NCBI GenBank assembly: GCA_004431415.1
Contig: QPMI01000219.1
Location: 1-64,000, forward strand
Direction: 5' to 3'
Length of the DNA stretch: 64,000 nt
From: Cyanophora paradoxa CCMP329
Taxonomy: Eukaryota > Plantae > Glaucophyta
The notes below the pieces were generated by a model. It was given only the letters and a program-made list of their open reading frames with translations. It was not told the origin of the DNA and did no database searches. Shown piece by piece: positions 3,458-48,918 of this stretch. Both the position numbers and the translations under genes were made by a program. Numbering within the stretch: position 1 is the stretch's first letter; each line of letters begins with the position of its first letter.

Positions 3458-3659
3458 TGATGCGAAGCGTAGTTCCCCTTCCCTTTCGCCGTAGCGAATG
3501 TAGCATGTACGTTAGTGATACCCCGTCCCTCGTGTAGGGGTATGTCATTCAATCATACGCGGGTATTACGCGTGTGTGCACGTGCGTCCCGGCACGGCAC
3601 TGCGCCGTGTGCGGAAGTGGCTTAGAACCCATCGTATAGACTCAAGCAGCTTCTTTTCA
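3458..3659 (+). repeat. 5' LTR of Gypsy A (202 bp, TG...CA)
   Basis: Near-identical to the reverse complement of 5948-6149; preceded by CCAC (TSD). Confidence 0.93.
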
Positions 3660-4223
3660 GCGGGGCTGCCGCCGGAAGCCATTGTATTTCGTGGCAGCGG
3701 TGGAATGTTCGACGCGAAGTGTTCGACAAAGCGGTCTCACAGCGTCTACGCATCGTTCTCCTGATTGCGTATACGCTTACAGTGCGTTCTGCAGCGATTT
3801 GCGCACTGCGACCTTTCATTGTCTATTCCGCCATTTTGCAGAGAACATAAGCTTGTTGCATCGCGATTCACTCATGGATCTCATTTTCGAAGCTGTGTGC
3901 GCCCTTGGCCGGCTGGCCGAGGTCGTTTGCTTGTGATACCTCCGTTTTCCGTGGAATCCCGCGAGTTTCCGGAGTTGTCTCTTTCCTCTCCTTTTGGAAT
4001 CTCTCTTTATCTCTCTTTCTTTCTTTTGGAACGATCTGAAATGTTTTCTTGAACACTGGCCTCGTCAAGCAACACTATTCGAGCAGTGTACCGTCGTAGG
4101 CTTGGGCCCTTTGCTAGGTCCTTAGTTAACGACTGTATTAATAAAGCTATCCTGCTCTCCGCACAGGCAGGAAGGCTGGCTGACGAGGACAACGTTTCTG
4201 TGGACATTGACCAGGAGGACATC

Positions 4224-5370
4224 ATGGCTGCCCAGCCTAGGGTGGACTTGATTAAGCCGCTCCTGCGCAATCTTCTTCTCCCCAAATTTGATATTCTGCT
4301 CCTTCTAGATTCCTTAAAAATGTTCGCGATGTGCTGAAGGCGATCTATGTCCTTACTTACTCCTTACTGGCGATCTTATGCCCACTGTGGACACCACTCC
4401 TTACTCCACATGGACGGCTCAGGCAAAGGCTGATTTTGACTATGCTTGGCCCCATGTGCAGTTGAAACTCCAGTCTGTCTTCAATGAGGCAGCTGGGGCC
4501 CATGACTTTTCTCGAGTGGTCCTTGAATGTGACAATTGGACAACTTTTCTCAAGAAGTTCGAGGATCACTTTATGCATTCGGATGTCCAGACGGATTCCG
4601 CTCGCAATTTCTGGTCCTATACATACCAGAGTGCTTGTCTCCAGGCTGGTACTCAAGTCAATTTTGAAGACTTTGCTGTGGAGAAGATGAAGCGAGCGGA
4701 GGAAGCTGGCATTCTCGAGAAAGTTGTGGTGAAGCAAATTTGGAGTGATGACCTGAAGTTGGGTGAGCTGCCTGCTGAATTGGACGACAATAAACTTCGC
4801 TTTTTGCGTCGGCTGCGCAGTCTCTGGACGGATCGCACTTCCTCTTTTTCTTCGTTTTCTCCTTTTGGAATTACTTCTCTTCCTTTTGGATCGCCGAAAA
4901 ATGTTTCTGGATTGAACGCTCTCACTTCGGAGCGTATTGAGTCTCTGATTGATGAGCGGGTCGAATCGAAGCTTAAACAGTTTTCTTTGAAGGTGGATGA
5001 TAAGCTTGATTCACTTCGTGACGAAACTCGCCGCCAATTGAGCGAGATTCGGCACGAGGCTCGCCAGCAATTTGACGAGTTGCGCGATGATTCTCGTCGC
5101 ACTTCTTCTATTATTTTGGATCGCATGGACCAGTTGTCTCGCCAGTTGCAGTATCGCCCTCGCGGTGATAGCTGGCGTGACCAGCCTCGTGGACATCACA
5201 ATTTTGATCGCAATCGTTCGAATGATAAATTTCTTAATTCTGGAAATGATTCTCGCAATTTTGGAAATTCTTCTGGTGGTTATCGCGGTCGCTCTGCTGA
5301 GCGCCGTGGGTCGTCGGCTGACCCTAGGGGTCGGGGCGGTTCGCAGCCCCGCCCGGCGGGAAAAGCCTAA
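4224..5370 (+). pseudogene. gag: Gypsy A gag, frameshifted near 4290 and about 4365
   Basis: MAAQPRVDLIKP...DFDYAWPHVQLKL...RRGSSADPRGRGGSQPR aligns with family B gag; 1-bp deletion relative to the copy near 28100. Confidence 0.82.
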
Positions 5371-5399
5371 CCCAGCCTGTTGTTGCCCGCCAGGCTGGG
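5358..5399 (+). promoter_or_regulatory. -1 ribosomal frameshift signal (G GGA AAA plus 9-bp stem-loop)
   Basis: Heptamer in gag phase; stem CCCAGCCTG/CAGGCTGGG; the -1 frame is open into pol. Confidence 0.85.
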
Positions 5400-5461
5400 G
5401 CGGCCAAGAAACCAGCCATTTTCGGCGCAGCGAATGGACTGCGATCGTTGCTGCCTTTGCC

Positions 5462-5947
5462 CAAGGCTAGCGCCTTGTGCATATTCCCCCAGAGAGATTT
5501 GGGGTGCATGTTTCTTCTATTTTGTGGCCGATCAGAAACCTGGGGCCTTTGACTGAGTGACTTGCTGGTGGGTGGGTCATCTTCCTAAGGCTAGCGCCTT
5601 GTGCATAATCCCCCAAAGAGATTTGAAGTGCATCCATCTTCTATTTTCTGGCAGATCGGAAACCAGGGGCCTTCGACTGAGTGACTTGCTGGTGGGTGGG
5701 TCATCTTCCTAAGGCTAGCGCCTTGTGCATATTCCCCCAAAGAGATTTGAAGTGCATCCATCTTCTATTTTCTGGCAGATCGGAAACCTGGGGCCTTCGA
5801 CTGAGTGACTTGCTGGTGGGTGGGTCATCTGCCTAAGGCTAGCGCCTTGTGCATATTCCCCCAGAGAGATTTGGGGTGCATGTTTCTTCTATTTTGTGGC
5901 CGATCGGAAACCTGGGGCCTTTGACTGAGTGACTTGCTGGTGGGTGG
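5462..5947 (-). repeat. 124-bp satellite, inverted block (~4 monomers)
   Basis: Reverse complement of the block 1 subfamily; abuts the 3' LTR through the TSD CCAC. Confidence 0.95.
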
Positions 5948-6149
5948 TGAAAAGAAGCTGCTTGAGTCTATACGATGGGTTCTAAGCCACTTCCGCACAC
6001 GGCGCAGTGCCCTGCCGGGACGCACGTGCACACACGCGTAATATCCGCGTATGAGTGAATGACATACCCCTACACGAGGGACGGGGTATCACTAACCTAC
6101 ATGCTACATTCGCTACGGCGAAAGGGAAGGGGAACTACGCTTCGCAACA
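5948..6149 (-). repeat. 3' LTR of Gypsy A (202 bp); polypurine tract at 6151-6160
   Basis: Matches 3458-3659. On the minus strand it is preceded by TGGAGGAGAG and followed by CCAC plus satellite. Confidence 0.93.
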
Positions 6150-6221
6150 ACTCTCCTCCAAGTAAGAAAAAGGCCACGTCCGCGCTGGCCAAGTCCAAGG
6201 AAGGAAAAGAAAAGAAAGAGA

Positions 6222-7643
6222 TCAATCAGGGTCCTTCCAAGGCTTGAGCCGAGAGGCATGGACCAATTGGCGCGAGCCCTCAGCAGGGGAACCACGCTCC
6301 TTAGGACCAGAATACTCCAGCAAGAAAGTAACTCCCTTGCCATGAGAAACATCTTTAAGCACAGTCCAAGGTCCAGTGAAACGATGGGAAAGCTTATCAG
6401 ACCGCCGAGTGGAAGGGGTCTTCACAGCAACAACTTCTCCAGGAATGAAAACTGGTTGAGAAGGCCGCTGCTGCTGCTTGGCAAGATATTCCTCCTTAGC
6501 TTGCTGAATGTCGGTATAAATCCGAGAGAAACGCCGTGCCAGCGTAGCCGGATAACCAGAAGGCTCTGAAGTAGTCACTTGAACTTCAGGAGTTGCCAGC
6601 AAGTCCACAGGAAGAATACAAGGCCTCCCATACAACATTTCGAAAGGAGTGTAGCCCGTTGTAGGATTAACGAAATTGCGCACTGCGAAGAGCGCAAACG
6701 GGAGAGAGAGATCCCATGTCGAAGCGTTTTTGTCAATGTAAAACCGCAGGCGAGTGACCAAGGTGTCATTCAATTTTTCCACAGCTCCTTGAGACTGCGG
6801 ATGATAAGAAGAAGAAAAGACCGCCTTTATTCCAAAAAGACGCTCCAGTTCATTAAGAAGCAAATTTTTGAATTCGCCGCCCTGATCCGACGAAATCTTG
6901 GCGGGGACTCCATGAAGGGGATTCCAGTGGTCGAACAAGGCCCGAACGACGGACATAGCCGACTTCGTTCGCGCGGGCACCGCATGGCACCAACGCGTAA
7001 AAACATCGATAATAGTAATCAGATATTTGTTGCCTTGCTTCGACTTCGGAAAAGGCCCGACGATGTCAATTTCCAAGTGCTGCATCGGCCGGTCAGCATG
7101 AATCTCGAATTGAGGAACCGCTTGAACAGTCTTGGAATTCTTGACACGTTGACAATCGGCACATGTCGAAACAAAGTTTGCGACATCAGAAAACATACTC
7201 CGCCAGTAATACCGCCGCTTGAGATGATTGTACATCTTGCCGACTCCCGGATGTCCGAGCGTGCGGTGCACCGATGACAGAATAGTTGATTCAAGATGAT
7301 CTGGTACGCAAATACGCACAAGTTTGTCCGAAGGCCGAGTGTGGACGAGAACGCCATCTTGCACAGAGAACTTGCCACTCTTGAGTTGGCGTTCGGCCTC
7401 CTTGTTGACACCTTGCGGTTCAATAGTAATATCTGATTCCAAATACTTAATCATATCCGCCAAAATAACATCATTTATTTGCTCATCCCGAATTCGAGCC
7501 GGGGGCAAACTCAACTGCAACTCAATTGCATCCAAGAAAGCGCTCGAAAAATTAGAAGAAAACTCCATCGCTTCCAAGGAAAGAACTGCAACTCGCACAA
7601 AACGAGAAAGAGCATCCGCATCGGCATTAGATTTGCCAGGCTT
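6222..7643 (-). pseudogene. pol: Gypsy A pol, piece 4 (end of RNase H and integrase)
   Basis: KPGKSNADADALSR, HHCC (HRTLGH...CADC), IDIVGP / SDQG / EKLN catalytic motifs, RFTGPW; no chromodomain. Confidence 0.93.
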
Positions 7644-7811
7644 ACGGATGCTGCTGCCTTCGATGACACATGGTGCTCGTTCTCCAAGCGGCTCTGCAAG
7701 ATGGCGCGTAAGCACAGAGCACATGTGATTAGCAAGCTTTACATGCATGAGCGCGGGGCGTTCAAAGCGCTGGGCGACGTCGAGATGAAGATCTACCGCC
7801 TGCCGCACGGA
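7644..7811 (+). pseudogene. LINE ORF2 fragment (post-endonuclease linker, piece 2)
   Basis: TDAAAFDDTW...LPHG joins in frame to the LINE break at 47959 and, across TSD CGGA, to 15296. Confidence 0.7.
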
Positions 7812-7891
7812 TGATGTGGAGTGTAGCTGGTTCGGGTTCTGTGTCGTAGTTTGCCCCCTACATCGCCCCTCTTTCTCTTTCGGCATAGGAT
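7812..7891 (+). repeat. Truncated Gypsy B LTR, probable original 5' partner of 15141-15295
   Basis: Same variant bases as the 15141 LTR; preceded by CGGA. Confidence 0.85.
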
Positions 7892-7892
7892 T

Positions 7893-8493
7893 TCAAGGCC
7901 CCAGGTTTCCGATCTGCCACAAAATAGAAGAAAGATGCACCCCAAATCTCTCTGGGGGAATATGCACAAGGCGCTAGCCTTAGGCAGATGACCCACCCAC
8001 CAGCAAGTCACTCAGTCCAACGCCCCAGATTACCGATCTGTGACAAAATAGAAGAAAGATGCACCCCAAATTTCTCTGGGGGAATATGCACAAGGCGCTA
8101 GCCTTAGGCAGATGACTCTTCCAAAAGCAAGTCACTCAGTCCAACGCCCCAGATTACCAACCTGCCACAAAATAGAAGAAAGATGCACTTCACATCTCTC
8201 TGGGGGAATATGCACAAGGCTCTAGCCTTAGGCAAATGACCCACCTGCCACCAAGTCACTCAGTCGAAGGCCCCAGGTTTCCGATCTGCCAGAAAATAGA
8301 AGAAAGATGCACCCCAAATCTCTCTGGGGGAATATGCACAAGGCGCTAGCCTTAGGCAGATGACCCTCCCAAAAGCAAGTCACTCAGTCCAATGCCCCAG
8401 GTTCCGATCTGCCACAAAATAGAAGAAAGATGCACCCCAAATATCTCTGGGGGAATATGCACAAGGCTCTAGCCTTAGGCAGATGACCCACCT
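7893..8493 (+). repeat. 124-bp satellite block (~5 monomers)
   Basis: Monomers carry the CCAAAAGCAAG / GATTACC variants shared with 43875-47646. Confidence 0.95.
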
Positions 8494-8648
8494 TGATGTG
8501 GAGTGTAGCTGGATCGGGTTCTGTGTCGTAGATTGCCCCCTACTTCGCCCCTCTTTCTCTTATGGCATAGGATATTTGTATCCCCTTCGTGTGCCCCTGC
8601 ACCCCAGTCTTGGTGTGTCCAATAATAAAGTGTCCACAATCCTTATCA
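8494..8648 (+). repeat. Gypsy B 5' LTR (155 bp, TGAT...ATCA)
   Basis: Direct repeat with 15141-15295; AATAAA near the 3' end. Confidence 0.95.
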
Positions 8649-8650
8649 TT

Positions 8651-8662
8651 TGGGGGCCGATG
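8651..8662 (+). promoter_or_regulatory. Candidate primer-binding site (TGGGGGCCG..., tRNA-Pro-like start)
   Basis: TGG 2 nt after the LTR; TGGGGGC matches the start of known tRNA-Pro PBSs. Host tRNA not available. Confidence 0.5.
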
Positions 8663-9263
8663 TGCAGAACCGCTCTGCCGCGGGAAAGTGTATAATCTTC
8701 TTCTTTGTCGTATTTGAAGGCTTCCTTTCGATGCTACGCGCTTGAATCTTGGAACTCGTCTGTCGTCGCGCGTACAGGCGCCAATCGTTCTCAAATGTGC
8801 TTTTGTGTGTAACTATTACCTATACGCATCGTTGGGACATCGCACAGCTGCTCTGCGCGCGCGCACGTGCTGGACTTCTGGCATGGAATGTTCTAGAACT
8901 TCGCTGAACCTCGCGTTCTGCGGTCGTTCCGTGTGCTACTGAGCTATACAAGACTCTTGCGCATGGTTTCTCGCCGCCTGCGTGCGTTCTGACGGTTTTC
9001 TGTGGAACCTTCCAGAACACCCCTTCCTGTCATGAAGTCTTGCTCTCGTCATCTAGACGCTTTCCTGCTGCTTCAGTAGTACTGCTCTCTTCTATTTCAA
9101 TCTGGCGAGTGCTACAAGGAGGTTGACCGCACTGCTGGACTTTGTGCTCGACCATCTGCTGACAGAAGTCCTTGGTGACCTCGCAGCAGAATCCCTTTCT
9201 GAACCCCTAGACGACGTGATTGTGGACGTTGATAACCAAGACGACATTAACCAGGAAGACGAC

Positions 9264-10354
9264 ATGGCACAGCCTAATGTGGACGTGCTCAAGCCCTTCC
9301 TCAAAACCGCTACTTTCCCTGCTTTCTCTGCCTCTTCTCCTACTGATTGGCTGGAGAGTGTGCAAGCACTCCTCCAGGTCGTTCAGATTATCCCCTCAGA
9401 TGGAACTGACGACCGCCCTGTGAATACATGGCCCAATCAAATGCAACTCGACCACAATTATGCTTGGAAGCAAGTTCTTATCAAGCTTGGATCCTGTTTT
9501 GCTCACGCTGAAAATGGAGCTGATTTCTGTCGTAAGGCTCTGCGAACTGCCTCATGGCCCGATTTCTTGAAGCAGTTCGATGAGTATTATCGACACAAGA
9601 GTGTTCAGCGTGATGCACGCAAGAAGTTCTGGGGCCTTAGCTATGCGGACGCCGTTCGTGACAATGGCAACATTCCAGTTCCATATGAGCAATTTTCCTC
9701 TACTGTGTTCCAATACGCAAAAGAGGTGAGACCCACAATCACGGACAACGAGATTATGAGTCATGTTTGGACTGAGTGCGGATTTCCTGGGGAGCTTCCC
9801 AGTGATCTTAAGAATCGTGCGCAATTCGATCACAGGTTGCGTACGATGTGGATTTCGTTTGTTCGAAGCGCGAATGTTGGAGCTTCGCCTTTCTTTTTCA
9901 ATTCTCCTAATCCGACGCTTCCAAAATTCTCGAATCCTGCGATAAACGCATTTTCTACTACCGAGCGCAGCAACTTCGTTACGCGCTCAGAGTTCGAGGA
10001 TTTTAAGGCTGAATTGGCGAAAGAAGTTGATTCGAAAGTGAATCGCCTCGATCGCAAAATTGACGATCGTCTTGATGAATTGCGTGCTGATTTGCGCGAT
10101 AACAATCGCCTCTTGCGCAACATTGCTTCGTCGCTGAAATTTTCTGATGCTGGTGCGCAAAACCGATCTCACGGAGGCGATGTCCAGCGCAGAGGCGACA
10201 GTTGGCGTGGCTCGTACAACTTCGAGAGTCTGGTCCCTCGTCTCGAGGTGGTCGTCCCCCTGCTCAGCGCGGACGCTCTCAGGAACGTCGCTCTGTGTCG
10301 GCTGATCCTGGTCGCCGAGGCAGCTCCCAGCCTCGCGGCTCGGGAAACGCCTAG
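9264..10354 (+). pseudogene. gag: Gypsy B gag (1-bp deletion near 10225)
   Basis: The copy ending at 42331 has the intact end ...SQPRGSGNA*; no CCHC knuckle. Confidence 0.85.
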
Positions 10355-10384
10355 CCCCGCCTGTTCTGCTCCGCCAGGCTGGGG
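10342..10384 (+). promoter_or_regulatory. -1 frameshift signal (G GGA AAC plus stem-loop)
   Basis: Classic slippery heptamer; CCCCGCCTG...CAGGCTGGGG stem; -1 frame reads RLAPPVLLRQAGAKLKPA into pol. Also at 42319-42325. Confidence 0.88.
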
Positions 10385-13300
10385 CGAAGTTGAAGCCAGC
10401 CACCCCTCGAGGCTCACTCGTGTCTCTTGCCCCGTTGATAACTTTCAATGAGTTTCTTCGTCGCTCGAGTGCACGTGGTGGTGTCTCTCTCTCTCATCCT
10501 TCTCCTATTGTCAATACGCATCCTTCTAACCCATCCTCCAATCCCTGTTCTGTTCCTCGAGTCCCTTTACCAGTACGGAGGGAAAACGTCATTTCAAGTG
10601 AATTACCTATTGTGGCCAAGCCTGTTCGTCCTTCCGATGGCGAACATACTTTCAATGGTCAAACGCAGTTGCGTGAGCAAACGCAAGACGCTGGGAATGT
10701 GCCTGCTCCAAGAACAGTGCAAATATTGAAGTCCAATGGTTTGATCGAGGAGAGGCAGTTTGCTTCGAGTTCTGATGCCCTTGGTCAATCCAATGCTACT
10801 TCTAAACTTGACATTCGTTCTTTTCAACGCAAGCACTATGCAAATCTTGCGAAATATTCGAATCTGGCCCCAGTGGCTGCTTCTCTTGAATATGATGGGC
10901 ATAACACTTACATACTCAACTCTGTGGACCTGAAGCATACCCCCGGAGGTCCTGCAGTTGCTGGACGTCGATTTGCGACTACTCCACCTGGTCGGTCACT
11001 GCTAGAGGTCAAAATAAAGGGTCGAGCCTACTCCTTTTTGCTGGACACAGGAGCGGACATTTCCATTATTCTTTTGCATCATGTGAAGGATCTTGGTCTT
11101 GAACATAAGCTGTTTCGAATTCATCACACGCCTTCAGTTCGCCTTCCAAATTCAGAAGTCATTCATGTTCCGGGAGAGATTGTCATTTCTGGGACAGTTG
11201 GTCCCTTGACTACTTCTATCCCTTTCCTGGTTTGCGATTTCCCTCGATTTTCCTATGATGGAATCTTGGGACAGGACTTCTTTAGTGCCCATGGAGTCAC
11301 TTACCAGAATTTGGAAGATGGACCGCGCACAAGGACAAGCCTGTTGAATGTAAGATTTTCCCCATTTGTCAAGGCACTGATCGGTCACGGGAGTCAGAGC
11401 CGGACTCTCCACCTGCTCCACCTGAGGAGAACTCAAGTTCATGCAGTAGCTGGACGCCTCAGGAGCATGGAGTGGTGCTGGAGGTGGCAAGATCAGTTAA
11501 AATTGCATCTGGAGAACAAAAGTGGGTTGAGTTTCGAGTGCGTGATCACCATTTTGTTCAAGATGGTGGAGGCAAGATTGAAGGTCGCTATGAATGGGAT
11601 GGCAATCCCATGATTCACGTGGCCAGTGGATATGCTGATTGCCGTGGAGGCAGAGTCAAGGCACTTGTGGTGAATTTTGACCGGCAACACGGTGGTCCCG
11701 CCACAACAGTGCCTCGTGGTCTCAAACTTGCTCGATTTGTTCCCTTGAGCAGAGTTGTTTCTGAGATTTGTGACATTGGCCCTGTACTTTCTTATGACCA
11801 AGATGGGCGTGGAAGCCTGGAGTATTTAAACAATGGCGCCCCTCGTGCTTCCGATGAGTCTTGTGCCAAGGAAGTTAATGTCACTTCTGCCGAAGCTGTT
11901 CTGACCTCTCAGCATTCTTTCTCTCAGCACAAACCTTCTGAGATCACTGATCATTCTGAGATTCCACATGGACATGGGCCTCTGAAATACCAATCTGCCA
12001 ATTCTTCTCCCTCAATTTCTTCTTCACTGCAGCCAGAAGTAGGTTCTTCTACATCGCTTGATATGCATTCCAAGAGTTCTTCGGTATCTATGGTTCCCCC
12101 ATTCACTCCCACTGCTCATCTTCAATATCAAGTATCCATTGATGAGGCGAAGTCTCTGTCGTTTGAGGAGCTTAAGCAACGATTCGGTGAGCCTGCTGCT
12201 GATATTCTTCGCCAGATTGATGTTGGAGATAGAGGAGACAAGTCTGAGGATCGTGCTCGCATGTATGAGTTTCTTGAGAAGAATATCAAGGTCTTCCAAG
12301 ATAAGCCTTCGGTTTATGATCCAAATACTCCTAAACCTCCAATCAAACATACCATTCCTACTGGGAATGCAGCTCCCATTGCTGAACCTCCTCGGAGGAT
12401 GTCTGCAACAGAACGTCAGAAAGTTCTTGATGAGACCAAATCTCTTCTGGAGCGCAATTTAATCAAGCCTTCTCGATCTGCTTGGGCGGCTCCTGTCGTC
12501 CTTGTCAAGAAGAAGGATGGTTCCTGGCGGTTCTGCATTGATTATCGGAGACTCAACGCTGTCACCTCTGATGATGCATATCCCCTCCCACGCATAGATG
12601 ATGCATTAGAAGCTTTGTCGGGTGCTATATATATATCTCTGCTGGTGATATCCCAGATGGCTACTGGGGTGTCGAAATGGATCCGAATGATAGGGAGAAA
12701 ACTGCTTTTCGTGCTCCCAATGGACTCTTTGAGTGGAACGTTATGCCTCAGGGTCTCAAGACGGCCCCTGCAACGTTTCAAATGTTGATGAATCAGGTTT
12801 TGGGTACATATCTGTATGTTTTTGTTCTGGTGTATCTGGACGACATCTGTGTGTTTTCCAAATCGCTGGAGCAACACTTCAAGGATCTTCAATGGGTTAT
12901 AGATGCTCTGTATGCTGCTAATCTTCGACTGAAACCGAAGAAGTGCAAGTTCTTCAACGCTGAAGTCGAATATCTGGGTTTCTTAGTCACACGCAATGGA
13001 ATCAAACCTTCCCATTCCAAGACTGCTGCAGTGAAAACCTTTCCAACTCCTAAAGATGCTTCTCAGGTTAGGTCTTTTCTGGGGTTAGTTGGATATTACA
13101 GGATATTCATTCCTGACTGTGCTATCATTGCTGGTCCACTTCATGATCTCACGAACAAGAACTCAATTTTCAAATGGGGAGATCAAGAAGACTTTGCATT
13201 CCGCAAGTTGAAGGAGATCCTGTGCTCAAGTCCCATTCTTGCATTTCCAGACTTCTCCAAACAGTTCATTCTAAAGACAGATGCTTCTAAGACTGGTGTT

Positions 13301-15100
13301 GGAGCTGTGCTTTCTCAATTGGACTCTTCTGGGAATGAACGAGTTGTGTCTTTTGCTTCTCATAAGTTCAATGCTTCGGAGAAGAAATGGACCAAAGAGA
13401 TTGTCATCGAGTATGCTGCCGAACCACTTACTGAGGATCAACATAAATGGACTGTCACTGAGCAAGAACTATATGCTGTCTGGTGGGCTGTCACTAAGAA
13501 ATTTCCTCAGTATCTCAAGGGTCAGAAATTTATTATCAAGTCGGATCATTCGGCTCTGCAATACTTGAAGACATCCAAGAAGTTCCCCAATGCTCGCATT
13601 GCCAGATGGATTCTCTCAATGCAAGAGTTTGACTTTGATGTGCACTACAAGCCTGGCAAACATAATCAGGATGCGGATGCTTTGTCTCGCATTGCACATG
13701 CTGCTGTTCGTGCAATTGAAGCTATGGAGGCTACTCCTAACCTTTTCTATTCGCTGCTGGATGCAATTGAACTTCAGCTGAACTTGGGCTCTGATCACAT
13801 CAGGACTGAGCAACTCAACGATTCTTTGCTGTCACCAGTGATCAAATACCTTGAAGAAGACATCACAATTGAACCAGAGGGCACTGACAAAGTTGCCGAG
13901 AAGATGATCAAGTCTAGCAAATTTGTTCTCAAGGATGGAGTCCTTTGTCATCATCTTGCTGGCGACAAGCTGTACAGAATTGTCATCCCTGCTCATCTCA
14001 CGTCTACCGTGCTCAAATCTGTTCATTTATCTCTTGGGCATCCTGGCGTTGGCAAGATGTACGACCATATGAAGAGGCGATATTACTGGAAGTCTATGTA
14101 CGCTGATATCCACAACTTCGTCCTCAAATGTCCTGACTGCCAGTTGATCAAGCCTTTTCGTGGTGCGAAAGACATCCCTCAAATTCCTATCTTCGCGGAT
14201 GGTCCTATGCAACACTTGGAGATCGATATTGTCGGTCCTCTTCCCAAGACGAATCGTGGCAACAAATATCTCGTGACGATTATCGATGTCTTCACCCGAT
14301 GGTCTTTCGCGCTGCCTGCACGAACTAAATCTCCAATCTACGTCATTCGTGCACTCTTCGATCACTGGATTCCTACTCATGGAGTTCCCAGGAAGATTTC
14401 ATCGGATCAAGGTTCGGAGTTCAAGAATGCGCTTTTGCAATCTCTTCAGCAGTTCTATGGAATAAAAGCTGTCTTTTCGTCTACGTATCATCCTCAGAGT
14501 CAAGGACTCGTTGAAAAACTGAACGATGTGCTCATTACAAGGCTTCGCTTCCATTGTGAGCGTAATCCGAAGGAATGGGATCTTTATCTTCCTTGCGCAT
14601 TACTCGCAGTTCGGAACTATCGCAATCCTCGTACTGGATATACGCCGTTCGAAATGGTGTATGGTCGTCCATGTGTACTTCCCGTTGATCTTCTGATCAA
14701 TCCGGATGGCGTAACGTCTGGTAATCATAATGAGTATGCGAAAATGTTGGCTCGTCGCTTTTCTCGCATTTACTCCGATGTCGAGTCTGAAAAACAACTC
14801 ATTCTTGCTAATCGGCCTGACAACGTTGCTCCAAGATTTGTCCCTGGTGAATTTGTCAAGGTCATGGCTATTCGGACTCGTCATTCTTCTAAATTGGATG
14901 CGAAGTTTACTGGTCCTTGGGCTGTTTTGCGTGACGTGACGCGTGGCCTTGGTAAATCGTTTGAAGTTCAGTTCGTTGGTGAGTCTGGTCGAAACGCGCC
15001 TAAGCCTGGTATGGTGCAAGTTCACCCTGTTAGTCGGCTACGCCCATGGCGATCTCCTTCTTCGATACATGAGCCCTCTACGCTCTCGTCTCGTTCCTAG
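10342..15100 (+). pseudogene. pol: Gypsy B pol (protease, dUTPase-like, RT, RNase H, integrase); frameshifts near 11330 and 12635
   Basis: FLLDTGAD; [19 protein letters not shown]; KTDASKTGVGAVL; HHCC; IDIVGP / SDQG / EKLN; KFTGPW. Confidence 0.95.
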
Positions 15101-15140
15101 TTGGCCAGCGAGGACGTGGCCTTCTCTACTACCGAGCGGA

Positions 15141-15295
15141 TGATGTGGAGTGTAGCTGGTTCGGGTTCTGTGTCGTAGTTTGCCCCCTACATCGCCCCTC
15201 TTTCTCTTTCGGCATAGGATATTTGTATCCCCTTCGTGTGCCCCTGCACCCCAGTCTTGGTGTGTCCAATAATAAAGTGTCCACAATCCTTATCA
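15141..15295 (+). repeat. Gypsy B 3' LTR (155 bp)
   Basis: Follows the pol stop by 40 bp; followed by CGGA. Confidence 0.95.
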
Positions 15296-15768
15296 CGGAG
15301 CTGATGCTGTTGCGCTGTACCGCGAGCGCTCCCAGAGACTTGAATCCCTACGCAAACTTCAGAAGAAGGTCTCTCTCAGCAATCGCCAGCTTGCCAGGCT
15401 TCAGCACCGGCTTACATTCGAAAGCGGCTCTAAGCGCGACTGGGCGCGGCTTGCCAGGCTCTCCTCCGTTGTCCCCCCGCCGCTGCATTTCACTTCTGAT
15501 GGTCCCATTGCTGTCGCTGTTGAGCCTGCTGCAGTTGCAAACTATTTGGCTAGAAAGCTTGAAGAACTGGGCGCTCCTACCCCTGCTTTCCTGTTGACCC
15601 AGACGTCCATCCTCGACGCTCTCTGCCCCCCTCCTGACCCCCCCGATGACCCTTCTATTGATATCCGCCTTCCTGCCCAGGATAATCCTTCCGCTGCTGC
15701 TTTCATTCGGCAATTTGTGGACGACCTCTTGCCTCATGTTCAGGGCACTGTCCCCCCTGCCTGGCGCA
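15296..15768 (+). pseudogene. LINE ORF2 fragment (endonuclease-RT linker, piece 3)
   Basis: Startless open frame GADAVALYRERSQRLESL...QGTVPPAW, in frame with 7644-7811 once the TSD is collapsed. Confidence 0.65.
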
Positions 15769-24884: not shown

Positions 24885-24921
24885 TTCAAAGTCTCACTGA
24901 GAAGCACATCGGTCGGAGCAG

Positions 24922-25263: not shown

Positions 25264-25265
25264 TA

Positions 25266-32328: not shown

Positions 32329-32329
32329 C

Positions 32330-32517: not shown

Positions 32518-32519
32518 CC

Positions 32520-37475: not shown

Positions 37476-40400
37476 ACAGCCCAAGGATCAGTAAACTTCG
37501 CATCCAATTTAGAAGAATGACGAGTCCGAATAGCCATGACCTTGACAAATTCACTAGGGACAAATCTTGGAGCAACGTTGTCAGGCCGATTAGCAAGAAT
37601 GAGTTGTTTTTCAGACTCGACATCGGAGTAAATGCGAGAAAAGCGACGAGCAAACATTTTCGCATACTCATTATGATTACCAGATGTTACGCCATCCGGA
37701 TTGATCAGAAGATCAACGGGAAGTACACATGGACGACCATACACCATTTCGAACGGCGTATATCCAGTACGAGGATTGCGATAGTTCCGAACTGCGAGTA
37801 ATGCGCAAGGAAGATAAAGATCCCATTCCTTCGGATTACGCTCACAATGGAAGCGAAGCCTTGTAATGAGCACATCGTTCAGTTTCTCGACGAGTCCTTG
37901 ACTCTGAGGATGATACGTAGACGAAAAGACAGCTTTTATTCCATAGAACTGCTGAAGAGATTGCAAAAGCGCATTCTTGAACTCCGAACCTTGATCCGAT
38001 GAAATCTTCCTGGGAACTCCATGAGTAGGAATCCAATGATCGAAGAGAGCACGAATGACGTAGATTGGAGATTTAGTTCGTGCAGGCAGCGCGAAAGACC
38101 ATCGGGTGAAGACATCAATAATCGTGACGAGATAGTTGTTGCCACGATTCGTCTTGGGAAGAGGACCGACAATATCGATCTCCAAGTGTTGCATAGGACC
38201 ATCCGCGAAGATAGGAATTTGAGGGATGTCCTTCGCACCACGAGAAGGCTTGACCAACTGGCAGTCAGGACATTTGAGGACGAAGTTGTGGATATCAGCG
38301 TACATAGACTTCCAGTAATATCGCCTCTTCATATGGTCGTACATCTTGCCAACGCCAGGATGCCCAAGAGATAAATGAACAGATTTGAGCACGGTAGACG
38401 TGAGATGAGCAGGGATGACAATTCTGTACAGCTTGTTGCCAGCAAGATGATGACAAAGGACTCCATCCTTGAGAACGAATTTGCTAGACTTGATCATCTT
38501 CTCGGCAAGTTTGTCAGTGCCCTCTGGTTCAATTGTGATGTCTTCTTCAAGGTATTTGATCACTGTTGACAGCAAAGAATCGTTGAGTTGCTCAGTCCTG
38601 ATGTGATCAGAGCCCAAGTTCAGCTGAAGTTCAATTGCATCCAGCAGCGAATAGAAATGGTTAGGAGTAGCCTCCATAGCTTCAATTGCACGAACAGCAG
38701 CATGTGCAATGCGAGACAAAGCATCCGCATCCTGATTATGTTTGCCAGGCTTGTAGTGCACATCAAAGTCAAACTCTTGCATTGAGAGAATCCATCTGGC
38801 AATGCGAGCATTGGGGAACTTCTTGGATGTCTTCAAGTATTGCAGAGCCGAATGATCCGACTTGATAATAAATTTCTGACCCTTGAGATACTGAGGAAAT
38901 TTCTTAGTGACAGCCCACCAGACAGCATATAGTTCTTGCTCAGTGACAGTCCATTTCTGTTGATCCTCAGTAAGTGGTTCGGCAGATGACAATCTCTTTG
39001 GTCCATTTCTTCTCCGAAGCATTGAACTTATGAGAAGCAAAAGACACAACTCGTTCATTCCCAGAAGAGTCCAATTGAGAAAGCACAGCTCCAACACCAG
39101 TCTTAGAAGCATCCGTCTTTAGAATGAACTGTTTGGAGAAGTCTGGAAATGCAAGAATGGGACTTGAGCCATGGATCTCCTTCAACTTGCGGAATGCAAA
39201 GTCTTCTTGATCTCTTCATTTGAAAATTGAGTTCTTGTTCGTGAGATCATGAAGTGGACCAGCAATGATAGCACAGTCGGGAATGAATATCCTGTAATAT
39301 CCAACTAACCCCAGAAAAGACCTAACCTGAGAAGCATCTTTAGGAGTTGGAAAGGTTTTCACTGCAGCAATCTTGGAAGGGGAAGGTTTGATTCCATTGA
39401 ATGTGACTAAGAAACCCAGATATTCGACTTCAGCCTGGAAGAACTTGCACTTCTTCGGTTTCAGTCGAAGATTAGCAGCATACAGAGCATCTATAACCCA
39501 TTGAAGATCCTTGAAGTGTTGCTCCAGCGATTTGGAGAACACACAGATGTCGTCCAGATACACCAGAACAAAAACATACAGATATGTACCCAAAACCTGA
39601 TTCATCAACATTTGAAACGTTGCAGGGGCCGTCTTGAGACCCTGAGGCATAACGTTCCACTCAAAGAGTCCATGGGGAGCACGAAAAGCAGTTTTCTCCC
39701 TATCATTCTGATCCATTTCGACACCCCAGTAGCCATCTGGGATATCACCAGTAGAGATATATATAGCACCCGACAAAGCTTCTAATGCATCATCTATGCG
39801 TGGGAGGGGATATGCATCATCAGAGGTGACAGCGTTGAGTCTCCGATAATCAATGCAGAACCGCCAGGAACCATCCTTCTTCTTGACAAGGACGACAGGA
39901 GCCGCCCAAGCAGATCGAGAAGGCTTGATTAAATTGCGCTCCAGAAGAGATTTGGTCTCATCAAGAACTTTCTGACGTTCTGTTGCAGACATCCTCCAAG
40001 GAGGTTCAGCAATGGGAGCTGCATTCCCAGTAGGAATGGTATGTTTGATTGGAGGTTTAGGAGTATTTGGATCATAAACCGAAGGCTTATCTTGGAAGAC
40101 CTTGATATTCTTCTCAAGAAACTCATACATGCGAGCACGATCCTCAGACTTGTCTCCTCTATCTCCAACATCAATCTGGCGAAGAATATCAGCAGCAGGC
40201 TCACCGAATCGTTGCTTAAGCTCCTCAAACGACAGAGACTTCGCCTCATCAATGGATACTTGATATTGAAGATGAGCAGTGGGAGTGAATGGGGGAACCA
40301 TAGATACCGAAGAACTCTTGGAATGCATATCAAGCGATGTAGAAGAACCTACCTCTGGCTGCAGTGAAGAAGAAATTGAGGGAGAAGAATTGGCAGATTG

Positions 40401-43400
40401 GTATTTCAGAGGCCCATGTCCATGTGGAATCTCAGAATGATCAGTGATCTCAGAAGGTTTGTGCTGAGAGAAAGAACGCTGAGAGGTCAGAACAGCTTCG
40501 GCAGAAGTGACATTAACTTCCTTGGCACAAGACTCATCGGAAGCAGGAGGGGCGCCATTGTTTAAATACTCCAGGCTTCCACGCCCATCTTGGTCATAAG
40601 AAAGTACAAGGCCAATGTCACAAATCTCAGAAACAACTCTGCTCAAGGGAACAAATCGAGCAAGTTTGAGACCACGAGGCACTGTTGTGGCGGGACCACC
40701 TTGTTGCCGGTCAAAATTCACCACAAGTGCCTTGACTCTGCACCACAAGTGCCTTGACAAGTGCATATCCACTGGCCACGTGAATCATGGGATTGCCGTC
40801 CCATTCATAGCGAACTTCAATCTTGCCTCCACCGTCTTGAACAACTCAACCCACTTTTGTTCTCCAGGTGCAATTTTAACTGATCTTGCCACCTCCAGCA
40901 CCACTCCATGCTCCTGAGGTGTCCAGCTACTGCATGAACTTGAATTCTTCTCAGGTGGAGCAGGTGGAGAGTCCGGCTCTGACTCCTGTGGCCGATCAGT
41001 GCCTTGACAAATTGGGAAAATCTTACATTCAACAGGCTTGTCCTTGAACCGTGAGAAGGTAACAGTGCGCCGTCCATCTTCCAAATTCTGGTAAGTGACT
41101 CCATGGGCACTAAAGAAGTCCTGTCCCAAGATTCCATCATCGGAAAATCGAGGGAAATCGCAAACCAGGAAAGGGATAGAAGTAGTCAAGGGACCAACTG
41201 TCCCAGAAATGACAATCTCTCCCGGAACATGAATGACTTCTGAATTTGGAAGGCGAACTGAAGGCATGTGACGAGTTCGAAACAGCTTATGTTCAAGACC
41301 AAGATCCTTCACATGATGCAAAAGAATAATGGAAATGTCCGCTCCTCCTCCAGGTCGTTCAGATTATCCCCTCAGATGGAGCTGACGACCGCCCTGTGAA
41401 TACATGGCCCAATCAAATGCAACTCGACCACAATTATGCTTGGAAGCAAGTTCTTATCAAGCTTGGATCCTGTTTTGCTCATGCTGAAAATGGAGCTGAT
41501 TTCTGTCGTAAGGCTCTGCGAACTGCCTCATGGCCCGATTTCTTGAAGCAGTTCGATGAGTATTATCGACACAAGAGTGTTCAGCGTGATGCACGCAAGA
41601 AGTTCTGGGGCCTTAGCTATGCGGACGCCGTTCGTGACAATGGCAACATTCCAGTTCCATATGAGCAATTTTCCTCTACTGTGTTCCAATACGCAAAAGA
41701 GGTGAGACCCACAATCACGGACAACGAGATTATGAGTCATGTTTGGACTGAGTGCGGATTTCCTGGGGAGCTTCCCAGTGATCTTAAGAATCGTGCGCAA
41801 TTCGATCACAGGTTGCGTACGATGTGGATTTCGTTTGTTCGAAGCGCGAATGTTGGAGCTTCGCCTTTCTTTTTCAATTCTCCTAATCCGACGCTTCCAA
41901 AATTCTCGAATCCTGCGATAAACGCATTTTCTACTACCGAGCGCAGCAACTTCGTTACGCGCTCAGAGTTCGAGGATTTTAAGGCTGAATTGGCGAAAGA
42001 AGTTGATTCGAAAGTGAATCGCCTCGATCGCAAAATTGACGATCGTCTTGATGAATTGCGTGCTGATTTGCGCGATAACAATCGCCTGTTGCGCAGCATT
42101 GCTTCGTCGCTGAAATTTTCTGATGCTGGTGCGCAAAACCGATCTCACGGAGGCGATGTCCAGCGCAGAGGCGACACTTGGCGTGGCTCGTACAACTTCG
42201 ACAAGTCTGGTCCCTCGTCTCGAGGTGGTCGACCCCCTGCTCAGCGCGGACGCTCTCAGGAACGTCGCTCTGTGTCGGCTGATCCTGGTCGCCGAGGCAG
42301 CTCCCAGCCTCGCGGCTCGGGAAACGCCTAGCCCCGCGTGTTCTGCTCCGCCAGGCTGGGGCGAAGTTGAAGCCAGCCAACCCTCGAGGCTCACTCGTGT
42401 CTCTTGCCCCGTTGATAACTTTCAATGAGTTTCTTCGTCGCTCGAGTGCACGTGGTGGTGTCTCTCTCTCTCATCCTTCTCCTATTGTCAATACGCATCC
42501 TTCTAACCCATCCTCCAATCCCTGTTCTGTTCCTCGAGTCCCTTTACCAGTACGGAGGGAAAACGTCATTTCAAGTGAATTACCTATTGTGGCCAAGCCT
42601 GTTCGTCCTTCCGATGGCGAACATACTTTCAATGGTCAAACGCAGTTGCGTGAGCAAACGCAAGACGCTGGGAATGTGCCTGCTCCAAGAACAGTGCAAA
42701 TATTGAAGTCCAATGGTTTGATCGAGGAGAGGCAGTTTGCTTCGAGTTCTGATGCCCTTGGTCAATCCAATGCTACTTCTAAACTTGACATTCGTTCTTT
42801 TCCACGCAAGCACTATGCAAATCTTGCGAAATATTCGAATCTGGCCCCAGTGGCTGCTTCTCTTGAATATGATGGGCATAACACTTACATACTCAACTCT
42901 GTGGACCTGAAGCATACCCCCGGAGGTCCTGCAGTTGCTGGACGTCGATTTGCGACTACTCCACCTGGTCGGTCACTGCTAGAGGTCAAAATAAAGGGTT
43001 GAGCCTACTCCTTTTTGCTGGACACAGTGCTTGCACACTCTCCAGCCAATCAGTAGGAGAAGAGGCAGAGAAAGCAGGGAAAGTAGCGGTTTTGAGGAAG
43101 GGCTTGAGCACGTTCACATTAGGCTGTGCCATGTCGTCTTCCTGGTTAATGTCGTCTAGGGGTTCAGACAGGGATTCTGCTGCGAGGTCACCAAGGACTT
43201 CTGTCAGCAGATGGTCGAGCACAAAGTCCAGCAGTGCGGTCAAGCTCCTTGTAGCACTCGCCAGATTGAAATAGAAGAGAGCAGTACTACTGAAGCAGCA
43301 GGAAAGCGTCTAGATGACGAGAGCAAGACTTCATGACAGGAAGGGGTGTTGTGGAAGGTTCCACAGAAAACCGTCAGAACGCACTCAGGTGGCGAGAAAC

Positions 43401-43874
43401 CATGCGCAAGAGTTTTTTATAGCTCAGTAGCACACGGAATGACCGCAGAACGCGAGGTTCAGCGAAGTTCTAGAACATTCCATGCCAGAAGTCCAGCACG
43501 TGCGCGCGCGCGCAGAGCAGCTGTGCGATGTCCCAACGATGCGTATAGGTAATAGTTACACACAAAAGCACATTTAAGAACGATTGGCGCCTATACGCGC
43601 GACGACAGACGAGTTCCAAGATTCAAGCGCGTAGCATCGAAAGGAAGCCGTCAAATACGACAAAGAAGAAGATTATACACTTTCCCGCGGCAGAGCGGTT
43701 CTGCACAGCGGCCCCCAAATGATAAGGATTGTGGACACTTTATTATTGGACACACCAAGACTGGGGTGCGGGGGCACACGAAGGGGATACAAATATCCTA
43801 TGCCATAAGAGAAAGAGGGGCGAAGTAGGGGGCAATCTACGACACAGAACCCGATCCAGCTACACTCCACATCA
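37476..43874 (-). mobile_element. Gypsy B copy 2 (3'-truncated, several indels, internal inversion 41347-43025; 5' LTR 43720-43874)
   Basis: Near-identical to 8494-14925 after re-inverting the internal segment. Confidence 0.94.
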
Positions 43875-46800
43875 AGGTGGGTCATCTGCCTAAGGCTAGA
43901 GCCTTGTGCATATTCCCCCAGAGAGATTTGGGGTGCATCTTTCTTCTATTTTGTGGCTGATCGGAACCTGCGGCCTCCGACTGGGTGACTTGCTGGTTGG
44001 AAGAGTCATCTGCCTAAGGCTAGCGCCTTGTGCATGTTCCCAGAGATATTTGGGGTGCATCTTTCTTCTATTTTGTGGCAGATCGGAACCTGGGGCATTG
44101 GACTGAGTGACTTGCTTTTGGGAGGGTCATCTGCCTAAGGCTAGCGCCTTGTGCATATTCCCCCAGAGAGATTTGGGGTGCATCTTTCTTCTATTTTGTG
44201 GCAGATCGGAAACCTGCGGCCTCCGACTGGGTGACTTGCTGGTTGGAAGAGTCATCTGCCTAAGGCTAGCGCCTTGTGCATTTTCCCAGAGATATTTGGG
44301 GTGCATCTTTCTTCTTTTTTGTGGCAGATCGGAAACCTGGGGTTTTTGATTGAGTGACTTGCTTTTGGGAGGGTCATCTGCCTAAGGCTAGCGCCTTGTG
44401 CATATTCCCCCAGAGAGATTTGAGGTGCATCATTCTTCTATTTTGTGGAAGATCAGAAACCTGGTGCCTTTGACTGGGTGACTTGCTGGTGGGTGGGTCA
44501 TCTGCCTAAGGCTAGCGCCTTGTGCATATTCCCCCAGAGAGATGTGAAGTGCATCTTTCTTCTATTTTGTGGAAGATCAGAAACCTGGTGCCTCTGACTG
44601 GGTGACTTGCTGGTGGGTGGGTCATCTGCCTAAGGCTAGCGCCTTGTACATATTCCCCCAGAGAGATATGGGGTGCATCTTTCTTCTATTTTCTGGCAGA
44701 TCGGAAACCTGGGGTGTTGGATTGAGTGACTTGCTTTTGGGAGGGTCATCTTCTTAAGGCTAGCGCCTTGTGCATATTCCCCCAGAGAGATTTGGGGTAA
44801 ATCTTTCTTCTATTTTCTGGCAGATCGGAACCTGCGGCCTCCGACTGGGTGACTTGCTGGTTGGAAGAGTCATCTGCCTAAGGCTAGCGCCTTGTGCATA
44901 TTCCCCCAGAGAAATTTGGGGTGCATCTTTCTTCTATTTTGTGACAGATCGGTAATCTGGGGCGTTGGACTGGGTGACTTGCTGGTGGGTGGGTCATCTG
45001 CCTAAGGCTAGGGCCTTGTGCATATTCCCCCAGAGAGATTTGGGGTGCATCTTTCTTCTATTTTGTGGCAGATCGGAAACCTGGGGCCTTTGACTGAGTG
45101 ACTTGCTGGTGGGTGGGTCATCTGCCTAAGGCTAGCGCCTTGTGCATATTCCCCCAGAGAGATTTGGGGTGCATCTTTCTTCTATTTTGTGGCAGATCGG
45201 AAACCTGCGGCCTCCGACTGGGTGACTTGCTGGTTGGAAGAGTCATCTGCCTAAGGCTAGCGCCTTGTGCATGTTCCCGGAGATATTTGGGGTGCATCTT
45301 TCTTCTTTTTTGTGGCAGATCGGAAACCTGGGGTTTTTGATTGAGTGACTTGCTTTTGGGAGGGTCATCTGCCTAAGGCTAGCGCCTTGTGCATATTCCC
45401 CCAGAGAGATTTGAGGTGCATCATTCTTCTATTTTGTGGAAGATCAGAAACCTGGTGCCTTTGACTGGGTGACTTGCTGGTGGGTGGGTCATCTGCCTAA
45501 GGCTAGCGCCTTGTGCATATTCCCCCAGAGAGATGTGAAGTGCATCTTTCTTCTATTTTGTGGAAGATCAGAAACCTGGTGCCTCTGACTGGGTGACTTG
45601 CTGGTGGGTGGGTCATCTGCCTAAGGCTAGCGCCTTGTACATATTCCCCCAGAGAGATTTGGGGTGCATCTTTCTTCTATTTTCTGGCAGATCGGAAACC
45701 TGGGGTGTTGGATTGAGTGACTTGCTTTTGGGAGGGACATCTTCTTAAGGCTAGCGCCTTGTGCATATTCCCCCAGAGAGATTTGGGGTGCATCTTTCTT
45801 CTATTTTCTGGCAGATCGGAAACCTGGGGCCTTCGACTGAGTGACTTGGTGGCAGGTGGGTCATTTGCCTAAGGCTAGAGCCTTGTGCATATTCCCCCAG
45901 AGAGATGTGAAGTGCATCTTTCTTCTATTTTGTGGCAGGTTGGTAATCTGGGGCGTTGGACTGAGTGACTTGCTTTTGGAAGAGTCATCTGCCTAAGGCT
46001 AGCGCCTTGTGCATATTCCCCCAGAGAGATTTGGGGTGCATCTTTCTTCTATTTTCTGGCAGATCGGAAACCTGGGGCCTTCGACTGAGTGACTTAGTGG
46101 CAGGTGGGGCATTTGCCTAAGGCTAGAGCCTTGTGCATATTCCCCCAGAGAGATGTGAAGTGCATCTTTCTTCTATTTTGTGGCAGGTTGGTAATCTGGG
46201 GCGTTGGACTGAGTGACTTGCTTTTGAAAGAGTCGTCTGCCTAAGGCTAGCGCCTTGTGCATATTCCCCCAGAGAAATTTGGGGTGCATCTTTCTTCTAT
46301 TTTGTCACAGATCGGTAATCTGGGGCGTTGGACTGAGTGACTTGCTGGTGGGTGGGTCATCTGCCTAAGGCTAGGGCCTTGTGCATATTCTCCCAGAGAG
46401 ATTTGGGGTGCATCTTTCTTCTATTTTGTGGCTGATCGGAACCTGCGGCCTCCGACTGGGTGACTTGCTGGTTGGAAGAGTCATCTGCCTAAGGCTAGCG
46501 CCTTGTGCATGTTCCCAGAGATATTTGGGGTGCATCTTTCTTCTTTTTTGTGGCAGATCGGAAACCTGGGGTTTTTGATTGAGTGACTTGCTTTTGGGAG
46601 GGTCATCTGCCTAGGGCTAGCGCCTTGTGCATATTCCCCCAGAGAGATTTGGGGTGCATCTTTCTTCTATTTTCTGGCAGATCGGAAACCTGGGGCCTTC
46701 GACTGAGTGACTTAGTGGCAGGTGGGTCATTTGCCTAAGGCTAGAGCCTTGTGCATATTCCCCCAGAGAGATGTGAGGTGAATCTTTCTTCTATTTTGTG

Positions 46801-47646
46801 GCAGGTTGGTAATCTGGGGCGTTGGACTGAGTGACTTGCTTTTGGAAGAGTCATCTGCCTAAGGCTAGCGCCTTGTGCATATTCCCCCAGAGAGATTTGG
46901 GGTGCATCTTTCTTCTATTTTCTGGCAGATCGGAAACCTGGGGCCTTCGACTGAGTGACTTAGTGGCAGGTGGGTCATTTGCCTAAGGCTAGAGCCTTGT
47001 GCATATTCCCCCAGAGAGATGTGAAGTGCATCTTTCTTCTATTTTGTGGCAGGTTGGTAATCTGGGGCGTTGGACTGAGTGACTTGCTTTTGGAAGAGTC
47101 ATCTGCCTAGGCTAGCGCCTTGTGCATATTCCCCCAGAGAAATTTGGGGTGCATCTTTCTTCTATTTTGTCACAGATCGGTAATCTGGGGCGTTGGACTG
47201 AGTGACTTGCTGGTGGGTGGGTCATCTGCCTAAGGCTAGCGCCTTGTACATATTCCCCCAGAGAGATTTGGGGTGCATCTTTCTTCTATTTTCTGGCAGA
47301 TCGGAAACCTGGGGCCTTTGACTGAGTGACTTGCTGGTGGGTGGGTCATCTTCCTTAGGCTAGCGCCTTGTGCATATTCCCCCAGAGAGATGTGAAGTGC
47401 ATCTTTCTTCTATTTTCTGGCAGATCGGAAACCTGAGGCCTTCGACTGAGTGACTTGGTGGCAGGTGGGTCATTTGCCTAAGGCTAGAGCCTTGTGCATA
47501 TTCCCCCAGAGAGATGTGAGGTGCATCTTTCTTCTATTTTGTGGCAGGTTGGTAATCTGGGGCGTTGGACTGAGTGACTTGCTTTTGGAAGAGTCATCTG
47601 CCTAAGGCTAGCGCCTTGTGCATATTCCCCCAGAGAGATTTGGGGT
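43875..47646 (-). repeat. 124-bp satellite block (~30 monomers; 991-bp higher-order duplication)
   Basis: Tandem monomers; matching variants at 44107/45098 and 44569/45560. Confidence 0.97.
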
Positions 47647-47958
47647 GAAAAAGTCGTTTCTTTTGCTTCTCACAAATTCTCATCTCCTGAGAAGAAGTGG
47701 AATCGGGAAGTTGTTATTGAATATGCAGCTGAGTCCCTTTCTGATGAGCAGCAGAAATGGACAGTCACGGAGCAGGAGTTGTATGCAATTTGGTGGGCTG
47801 TCACCAAGAAATTTCCTCAATATCTCCGTGGCAAGAAGTTTATTATCAAGTCTGATCACTCGGCTCTTCAATATTTGAAATCGGCTAAGAAGTTGCCCAG
47901 TGCTCGCATCACTCGCTGGATTATGGATATGCAAGAGTTTGATTTCGAAATCCAGCAC
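47647..47958 (+). pseudogene. pol: Gypsy A pol, piece 3 (RNase H core)
   Basis: EKVVSFASHKF...TEQELYAIWWAV...SDHSALQYL...FDFEIQH fills the gap between pieces 2 and 4 exactly. Confidence 0.88.
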
Positions 47959-48916: not shown

Positions 48917-48918
48917 AT

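Follow-up and report, generated by a model that had tools for sequence, protein, structure and literature searches.

How did one retrotransposon come to lie in four separate pieces, in both orientations, with its internal sequence preserved? The question is raised by a stretch of the genome of the glaucophyte Cyanophora paradoxa CCMP329 (assembly GCA_004431415.1, contig QPMI01000219.1, positions 1 to 64,000; this whole stretch of 64,000 nucleotides is hereafter called the window), in which a Gypsy element, denoted A1, is spread over about 44 kb. An original prediction for this locus had described four abutting pieces produced by balanced multi-break cutting and re-ligation, either chromothripsis-like or through serial inversions. 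We find that the pieces fit each other to within about one base, and that three simple inversions suffice to explain their present arrangement.

The four pieces of element A1

The window contains nine arrays of one 124-bp satellite and, between these arrays, Gypsy elements of two related families, a fragment of a long interspersed nuclear element (LINE) and a partly duplicated glycosyltransferase-like gene. The pieces of A1 sum to 6,809 bases and are listed here in element order, followed by the copy of the related family B that served as the yardstick for the joins (LTR, long terminal repeat; ORF, open reading frame; RT, reverse transcriptase).

3458-5441, + strand: A1 piece 1; 5' LTR (3458-3659), leader, gag ORF (4378-5370) and start of pol
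28279-31095, - strand (read 31095-28279): A1 piece 2; pol domains protease, RT and the initial third of RNase H; one in-frame stop in 2,817 nt
47647-47958, + strand: A1 piece 3; the other two thirds of RNase H; 312 nt without a stop
5948-7643, - strand (read 7643-5948): A1 piece 4; integrase, end of pol, polypurine tract and 3' LTR (6149-5948)
8493-15295, + strand: family B copy B1; colinear and nearly intact

Once the pieces are set in the order 2, 3, 4, the domain order protease, RT, RNase H, integrase is recovered, the same order as in family B: according to Pfam, piece 2 carries protease, RT and RNase H profile positions 1-32, piece 3 carries RNase H positions 28-105, and piece 4 carries integrase. 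The satellite halts at phase 85 of its monomer (3457) and restarts inverted at phase 82 (5947), which gives a 4-bp target-site duplication, CCAC (phases 82-85), on both outer flanks of the element. The two LTRs (202 bp, TG...CA) differ at 4 of 199 aligned bases and are thus ~98% identical. By its domain order, and by its LTR pair with the duplication, A1 is a Ty3/Gypsy LTR retrotransposon. The reading frames are almost intact across the pieces, which is consistent with recent events.

The joined A1 was never assembled; each piece was aligned singly to the colinear B1. In B1, the last base of piece 3 maps to 13648 and the first base of piece 4 to its neighbour, 13649, and the corresponding peptides, FDFEIQH and KPGK, have a gapless counterpart in B1, FDFDVHYKPGK. 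The end of piece 2 and the start of piece 3 fall on 13335/13337, a one-base offset that we attribute to the alignment because the C-terminal ...SQLDEFGN of piece 2 and the N-terminal EKVVSFASH of piece 3 are again matched gaplessly in B1, by SGNERVVSFASH. The 1/2 join, GGACTG followed by ATTACTCTC, is found unbroken at 26952 in a second, partial copy of A1. No base was lost or gained at 2/3 and 3/4, and at most one ambiguous base is left at 1/2. Large gaps or overlaps at the joins were looked for in family B and in the second partial copy, and none were found. Coincidence cannot explain three joins that are exact to within ~1 base in a 6.8-kb element.

All three breaks lie on codon boundaries of pol, piece 2 comprising 939 codons and piece 3 comprising 104, an outcome with a chance probability of ~1 in 27. 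An exact look-up of a 554-aa junction-spanning ORF in a protein collection gave no match, and a homology search gave no relative above 33% identity, so that the collection evidently lacks the elements of this genome.

About 1.8 kb of A1 occurs twice, at 32330-32517 and 28278-26656, and the second occurrence is itself divided, as follows.

32330-32517, + strand: fragment b'; 188 nt equivalent to 3924-4111, with 4 substitutions (97.9% identity), between oppositely oriented satellite arrays
26656-28278, - strand: copy c'd'; equivalent to 4115-5441 and on through the initial 297 nt of piece 2, contiguous across the 1/2 join
32521-47646, - strand: block of satellite S7(-), family B copy B2(-) and satellite S8(-), which separates b' from piece 3

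The end of b' (4111) and the start of c' (4116) represent one break, the two sides of which are now parted by this 15-kb block of satellite, family B copy and satellite. Copy c'd' differs from A1 by 6 substitutions and 2 indels in 1,624 nt (99.5-99.7% identity). The divergence from A1 is thus 2.1% for b' and 0.4% for c'd', compared with 2.0% for the LTR pair, all of these being small counts. If c'd' was copied from A1, all three inversions would postdate that copy, because c'd' retains the unbroken 1/2 join at 0.4% divergence, a timing that depends on small counts. The duplicates diverge mainly through substitutions, as in diverged real DNA. A split of b' from c'd' by inversions only was considered and rejected: it takes 5 reversals for 7 breakpoints and thus yields no clean inversion history.

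Most of what the original prediction said of the element itself is borne out: the four abutting pieces in both orientations, colinear with family B; their genomic order 1(+), 4(-), 2(-), 3(+); the two peptide joins that family B reads gaplessly; the 1/2 join preserved in the second copy; and the CCAC in satellite that accompanies the LTR pair. Ordinary nested insertion and decay was rightly set aside, given that the pieces stand in both orientations and are flanked by satellite at non-matching phases or by broken elements. The statement that the whole element is present once is incorrect, because 3924-4111, and 4115-5441 with 297 bases of piece 2, recur. The limit of 3 nt gained or lost per break is valid for the breaks of A1 (0-1 base) and is exceeded at the junction after piece 1, which contains a filler of 9-16 nt.

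A proposed reconstruction by three inversions and its alternatives

The reconstruction draws on the orientation and phase of the satellite arrays and on the sequences that border the pieces.

1-3457, + strand: satellite S1; 5' flank of A1, last base at monomer phase 85
5442-5457, no strand assigned: filler at the junction left by inversion 1; length 9-16 nt, alignment-dependent
5458-5947, - strand: satellite S2; original 3' flank of A1, phase 82 at 5947 and phase 75-76 at the left end
7644-7893, + strand: stretch u (164 nt) followed by 84 nt of family B LTR; partner side of the 3/4 break
7894-8492, + strand: satellite S3
15766-19347, + strand: satellite S4
25263-25553, + strand: satellite S5
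31096-32328, + strand: satellite S6; first base at phase 74-75, continuation of S2
32521-37474, - strand: satellite S7
43876-47646, - strand: satellite S8; reaches piece 3 at phase 27
47959-48916, - strand: LINE fragment with endonuclease domain; partner side of the 3/4 break
59799-60253, - strand: satellite S9

The six junctions at the edges of the pieces divide the window into the blocks alpha (1-5441), beta (5442-7643), gamma (7644-28278), delta (28279-31095), epsilon (31096-47646), zeta (47647-47958) and eta (47959 onward). The structure of A1 alone sets the old order alpha, -delta, zeta, -beta. The link from -beta to epsilon also holds: S2, read in its own + sense, stops at phase 75-76 against the end of piece 1, S6 starts at phase 74-75 against the start of piece 2, the two sides of this satellite break overlap by 0-3 nt, and the monomers of S1, S2 and S6 are of one subtype (94-95% mutual identity, vs 88-91% to S3, S7 and S8). 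The phase match and the common subtype identify the 1/2 break and the satellite break 0.5 kb downstream as the two ends of one reciprocal inversion. After pairing of the leftover junctions, the full old order is alpha, -delta, zeta, -beta, epsilon, -gamma, eta.

Relative to this old order, the present one is 1 -4 -6 -2 5 3 7, with a reversal distance of 3, the minimum for 6 breakpoints, reached by two paths; the number of reversals is half the number of breakpoints (3 vs 6), as simple two-break inversions predict. In present coordinates, the rearrangement is undone by inverting 28279-47646, then 7644-47958, then 5442-10772. In the restored order, S1, S2 and S6 are in + orientation and S7, S8, S5, S4, S3 and S9 in - orientation, with the switch at 32330; the number of satellite polarity switches falls from 3 to 1, and the three family B copies share one orientation. 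We therefore moderately favour, from this reconstruction, a history of serial inversions in which three reciprocal two-break events would account for the four-piece state.

Under such a history, a young Ty3/Gypsy element of ~6.8 kb would have entered an array of the 124-bp satellite, generating the 4-bp duplication CCAC. The first inversion, of ~5.3 kb, would have run from the 1/2 join to a satellite monomer 0.5 kb downstream of A1. Two further inversions, in either order, would have followed, one of ~40 kb from the 3/4 join to the junction of u with the LINE, and the other of ~19 kb from the 2/3 join to the junction of S8 with the second partial copy. Each would have made one break inside A1, and end joining would have resealed it, with 0-1 bases of A1 lost or gained per break. 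We infer the separateness of the inversions in time, the former adjacency of the partner sides of inversions 2 and 3, and the repair pathway. In such an account A1 acts as a barcode, given that inversions with both breaks in satellite leave no recognisable junction, and the true rate of inversion in this satellite domain is probably higher than that seen.

The junction left by the first inversion carries the filler, one part of which, CGATCGTTG, has no other copy in the window, and the rest of which repeats the adjoining satellite bases CTGCCT; CTG stands on both sides. Microhomology-mediated end joining leaves short fillers that repeat neighbouring bases. For inversions 2 and 3, both new junctions are present in the window, and the restored neighbours form two pairs, phase 27 of S8 with position 4116 of the second copy, and u with the truncated LINE. 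The LINE (region 47959-50064, - strand) is truncated within ORF2, ~78 codons past the endonuclease domain, and its RT part is absent from the window. Stretch u (7644-7807) has open frames on both strands; the sole grounds for regarding it as a candidate continuation of the LINE ORF2 are an open frame in the right orientation, in a register that is off by one base. A tblastx comparison of u, v (15296-15765) and x (26405-26655) with the window gave no match, and a feature search of the ESM Atlas with u gave scores below 0.9, too low to inform. The adjoining 7808-7891 is an 84-nt copy of the start of the B1 3' LTR, 100% identical to 15137-15220.

Several considerations weigh against the serial-inversion history. 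The naturalness of the restored neighbours, S8 beside c' and u beside the LINE, cannot be shown; if these are older junctions, inversions 2 and 3 reused a breakpoint exactly, and a single multi-break event would fit better. Four of the six breakpoints fall within 5.3 kb of the old order, a clustering that is in part an effect of ascertainment through the A1 barcode, because a break in satellite can be recognised only when its partner is in unique sequence. The inversion account covers neither the second partial copy nor the 15-kb block by which that copy is divided; to restore the copy as well would take 5 reversals for 7 breakpoints. All junctions, moreover, are known from the assembled sequence alone.

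A single chromothripsis- or chromoplexy-like event, with at least six simultaneous cuts and re-ligation of the fragments in new order and orientation without internal loss from A1, would agree with the clustered and clean breaks, with the short fragments newly joined at both ends (piece 3, 312 nt; b', 188 nt; u, 164 nt; the 84-nt LTR bit), and with the partner sides of two inversions being other unnatural junctions, with no need for breakpoint reuse. Random re-ligation, however, would seldom give the order observed: for five fragments with all six neighbourhoods broken, 35 of 2,121 signed arrangements (1.7%) are sortable by three inversions, or 62 of 1,680 (3.7%) when the orientation of gamma is left free. 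Serial two-break inversions are thereby favoured over random re-ligation by roughly 25-60 to 1. Uniform satellite polarity is regained in the inferred old order, and shattering does not produce the extra copies b' and c'd', the divergence of which (2.1% vs 0.4%) hints at different ages. We regard one such event as unlikely. Accordingly, of the two histories proposed originally, serial inversions gain from the reversal distance of 3 and the reciprocal first inversion, and the chromothripsis-like one is disfavoured by the rarity of such orders among random re-ligations. The description of the rearrangement as balanced is accurate for the three breaks of A1 itself and not for the locus as a whole, with its partial second copy, captured fragments (several junctions carry short fragments of 84-312 nt) and non-reciprocal satellite junctions; for satellite edges at phases 4, 17, 27, 44, 69, 91, 108 and 111, no reciprocal partner was found within the window. 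Extra copies (b', c'd', the 84-nt LTR bit, and S5, identical to part of S8) and short inserts at junctions are what replicative template switching would leave, that is, fork stalling and template switching or microhomology-mediated break-induced replication (chromoanasynthesis), in which a broken fork copies nearby templates in both orientations; the partial repetition of adjoining bases by the filler at 5442-5457, and an exact inversion in B2 with 3-nt inverted microhomology (TCC/GGA), agree with it too. Yet copying keeps the template, and everything in A1 except 3924-5441 and the opening 297 nt of piece 2 is found a single time; the pieces complement each other exactly, which is the signature of DNA that was cut and rejoined; and the microhomology at A1 junctions is 0-1 nt. 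Template switching thus appears improbable as the source of the four pieces.

A programmed process, either (un)scrambling of the kind known from germline genes of ciliates or recombinase-driven inversion at specific sites, might be suspected from the very precise joins, from several inversions within one 44-kb stretch and from the three breaks on codon boundaries (2,817 = 939 x 3; 312 = 104 x 3; chance ~1 in 27). Against it, consecutive pieces share no pointer repeats, none longer than 1 nt being found at the three joins; the breakpoints, when compared, have neither a motif in common nor inverted repeats above 3 nt in length; the unit that was broken is selfish and serves no evident function for the host; and no recombinase gene is present among the ORFs scanned. 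The original suggestion that programmed scrambling is possible accordingly finds no support here, and we consider it highly improbable. It is also unlikely that a long-read assembler or chimeric reads created certain junctions or the arrangement of blocks between arrays. The region is satellite-rich, and the published assembly was built from ~75x noisy PacBio RSII reads with Canu v1.0 and polished (PMC6704402), which would be a source of error if that assembly is the one used here. The key junctions, however, are in unique sequence, outside the repeats where assemblers misjoin; the arrays between blocks are 0.3-5 kb long, below the stated 15-kb inserts at ~75x; and the duplicated parts differ by substitutions and not just by indels. 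No assembly artefact known to us yields junction pairs that, like these, are reciprocal to the base and agree in satellite phase and subtype.

Family B copies and other features of the window

The second family B copy is rearranged in its own right.

37476-43875, - strand: family B copy B2; contains an in-place inversion (41346-43026)

This inversion spans exactly 1,680 bases (41346-43026, equivalent to 9370-11049 of B1). It interrupts the copy at 41345/41346 and 43026/43027 without loss or gain of a base and shows the TCC/GGA inverted microhomology mentioned above; the inverted stretch is 99.3% identical to B1. Its length equals 560 codons. Three breakpoints in the family B leader, at 9312, 9355 and 9369, fall within 58 nt of each other, adjoining a short hairpin-capable motif, CTGGAG...CTCCAG. 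The region 24922-26404 is a patchwork of B 9543 to 9312 inverted, B 8494 to 8603, 291 bp of satellite, and B 8493 to 9355, of which the satellite bit (S5) is 100% identical to the B2 flank. Five breakpoints rejoined without base loss, the B2 inversion exactly in place and the three B breakpoints within 58 nt are the basis for a further reading, that the repeat domains of this alga host an unusually active and unusually precise inversion-making process. We consider this reading rather unlikely; such a process might be linked with repair through hairpins or fold-backs.

The 5' ends of the family B copies (8493, 25554 and 43875) all adjoin satellite phase 86, and the 5' end of A1 (3458) adjoins phase 85, with equal orientation to the satellite. 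The insertions of the two families, 1 nt apart in the satellite, may reflect a target preference. One rare flank variant (GGCTCTAGCC ... ACCT ahead of the LTR) is common to B1, B2 and B3, and the flanks of B2 and B3 are identical over 288 bases. The three copies therefore go back to one insertion that was segmentally duplicated together with its satellite. Independent site-specific insertion of three B copies at phase 86 is ruled out by the common rare variant and the 288-base identity of B2 and B3.

Other duplications are present elsewhere in the window. A 2,361-bp direct repeat at 19348-24401 (99.4% identity, offset 2,696 bp) carries ORFs with glycosyltransferase family 92 domains and has satellite arrays on both sides. 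At 55338-57460 and 60254-62504 (and, within the latter, 60429-60856), a family B-like 3' end with LTR occurs twice, the copies being 98.9% identical and running on into common sequence; one of these copies directly follows S9, and in both a tandem repeat of 146 bp precedes the LTR. The satellite and element part of the window has a GC content of ~50%, vs a genome average of 67.6% (PMC6704402), indicating a repeat domain of distinct composition.

Known systems and implications

To our knowledge, no centromere or heterochromatin dynamics have been described in glaucophytes. The closest known case is the reshuffling of plant centromeres through repair of double-strand breaks, of which this locus would be a further example in a distant lineage. 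'Reshuffling' was reportedly described for rice CEN8 by Ma and Bennetzen in 2006. In maize CEN10, inversions, partial and chimeric centromeric retrotransposons, segmental duplications and microhomology have been documented and traced to double-strand break repair (Wolfgruber et al. 2016, PMC4806543), and microhomology-mediated end joining in maize is discussed in the same work (PMC4806543). As in CEN10, a tandem satellite has here been invaded by Gypsy elements that mark inversions, duplications and deletions with little or no homology at the junctions, and blocks of satellite plus element, here B1, B2 and B3, have been segmentally duplicated. Unlike CEN10, the present locus belongs to a glaucophyte alga, is of kilobase rather than megabase scale, and has a satellite domain known from sequence alone; three inversions in one 6.8-kb element are resolved to the base, the reciprocal satellite break included.

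Chromothripsis and balanced chromoplexy share with this locus the clustered breakpoints, both orientations, clean end joining and, for A1, the lack of internal loss, but not an order sortable by three inversions (1.7-3.7% of random re-ligations), extra copies, or duplicates of different ages. The scrambled germline genes of the ciliates Oxytricha and Stylonychia resemble A1 in that segments of one coding unit are dispersed, inverted and exactly fitting, whereas A1 is a transposon, lacks pointer repeats and gives no sign of an unscrambled somatic form. A new biological mechanism is not indicated, and the evidence favours neither a programmed nor a catastrophic process; the locus stands out only in that one element records three inversions at base resolution.

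In practical terms, single elements with a matching target-site duplication, combined with satellite phase, make it possible to count inversions that satellite DNA would otherwise hide and to establish their order. If confirmed, the locus would provide a base-resolution record of the reshuffling of a satellite-plus-retrotransposon domain in a glaucophyte, and would imply that the break-and-rejoin inversion, segmental duplication and fragment capture of plant centromeres operate in this alga too.

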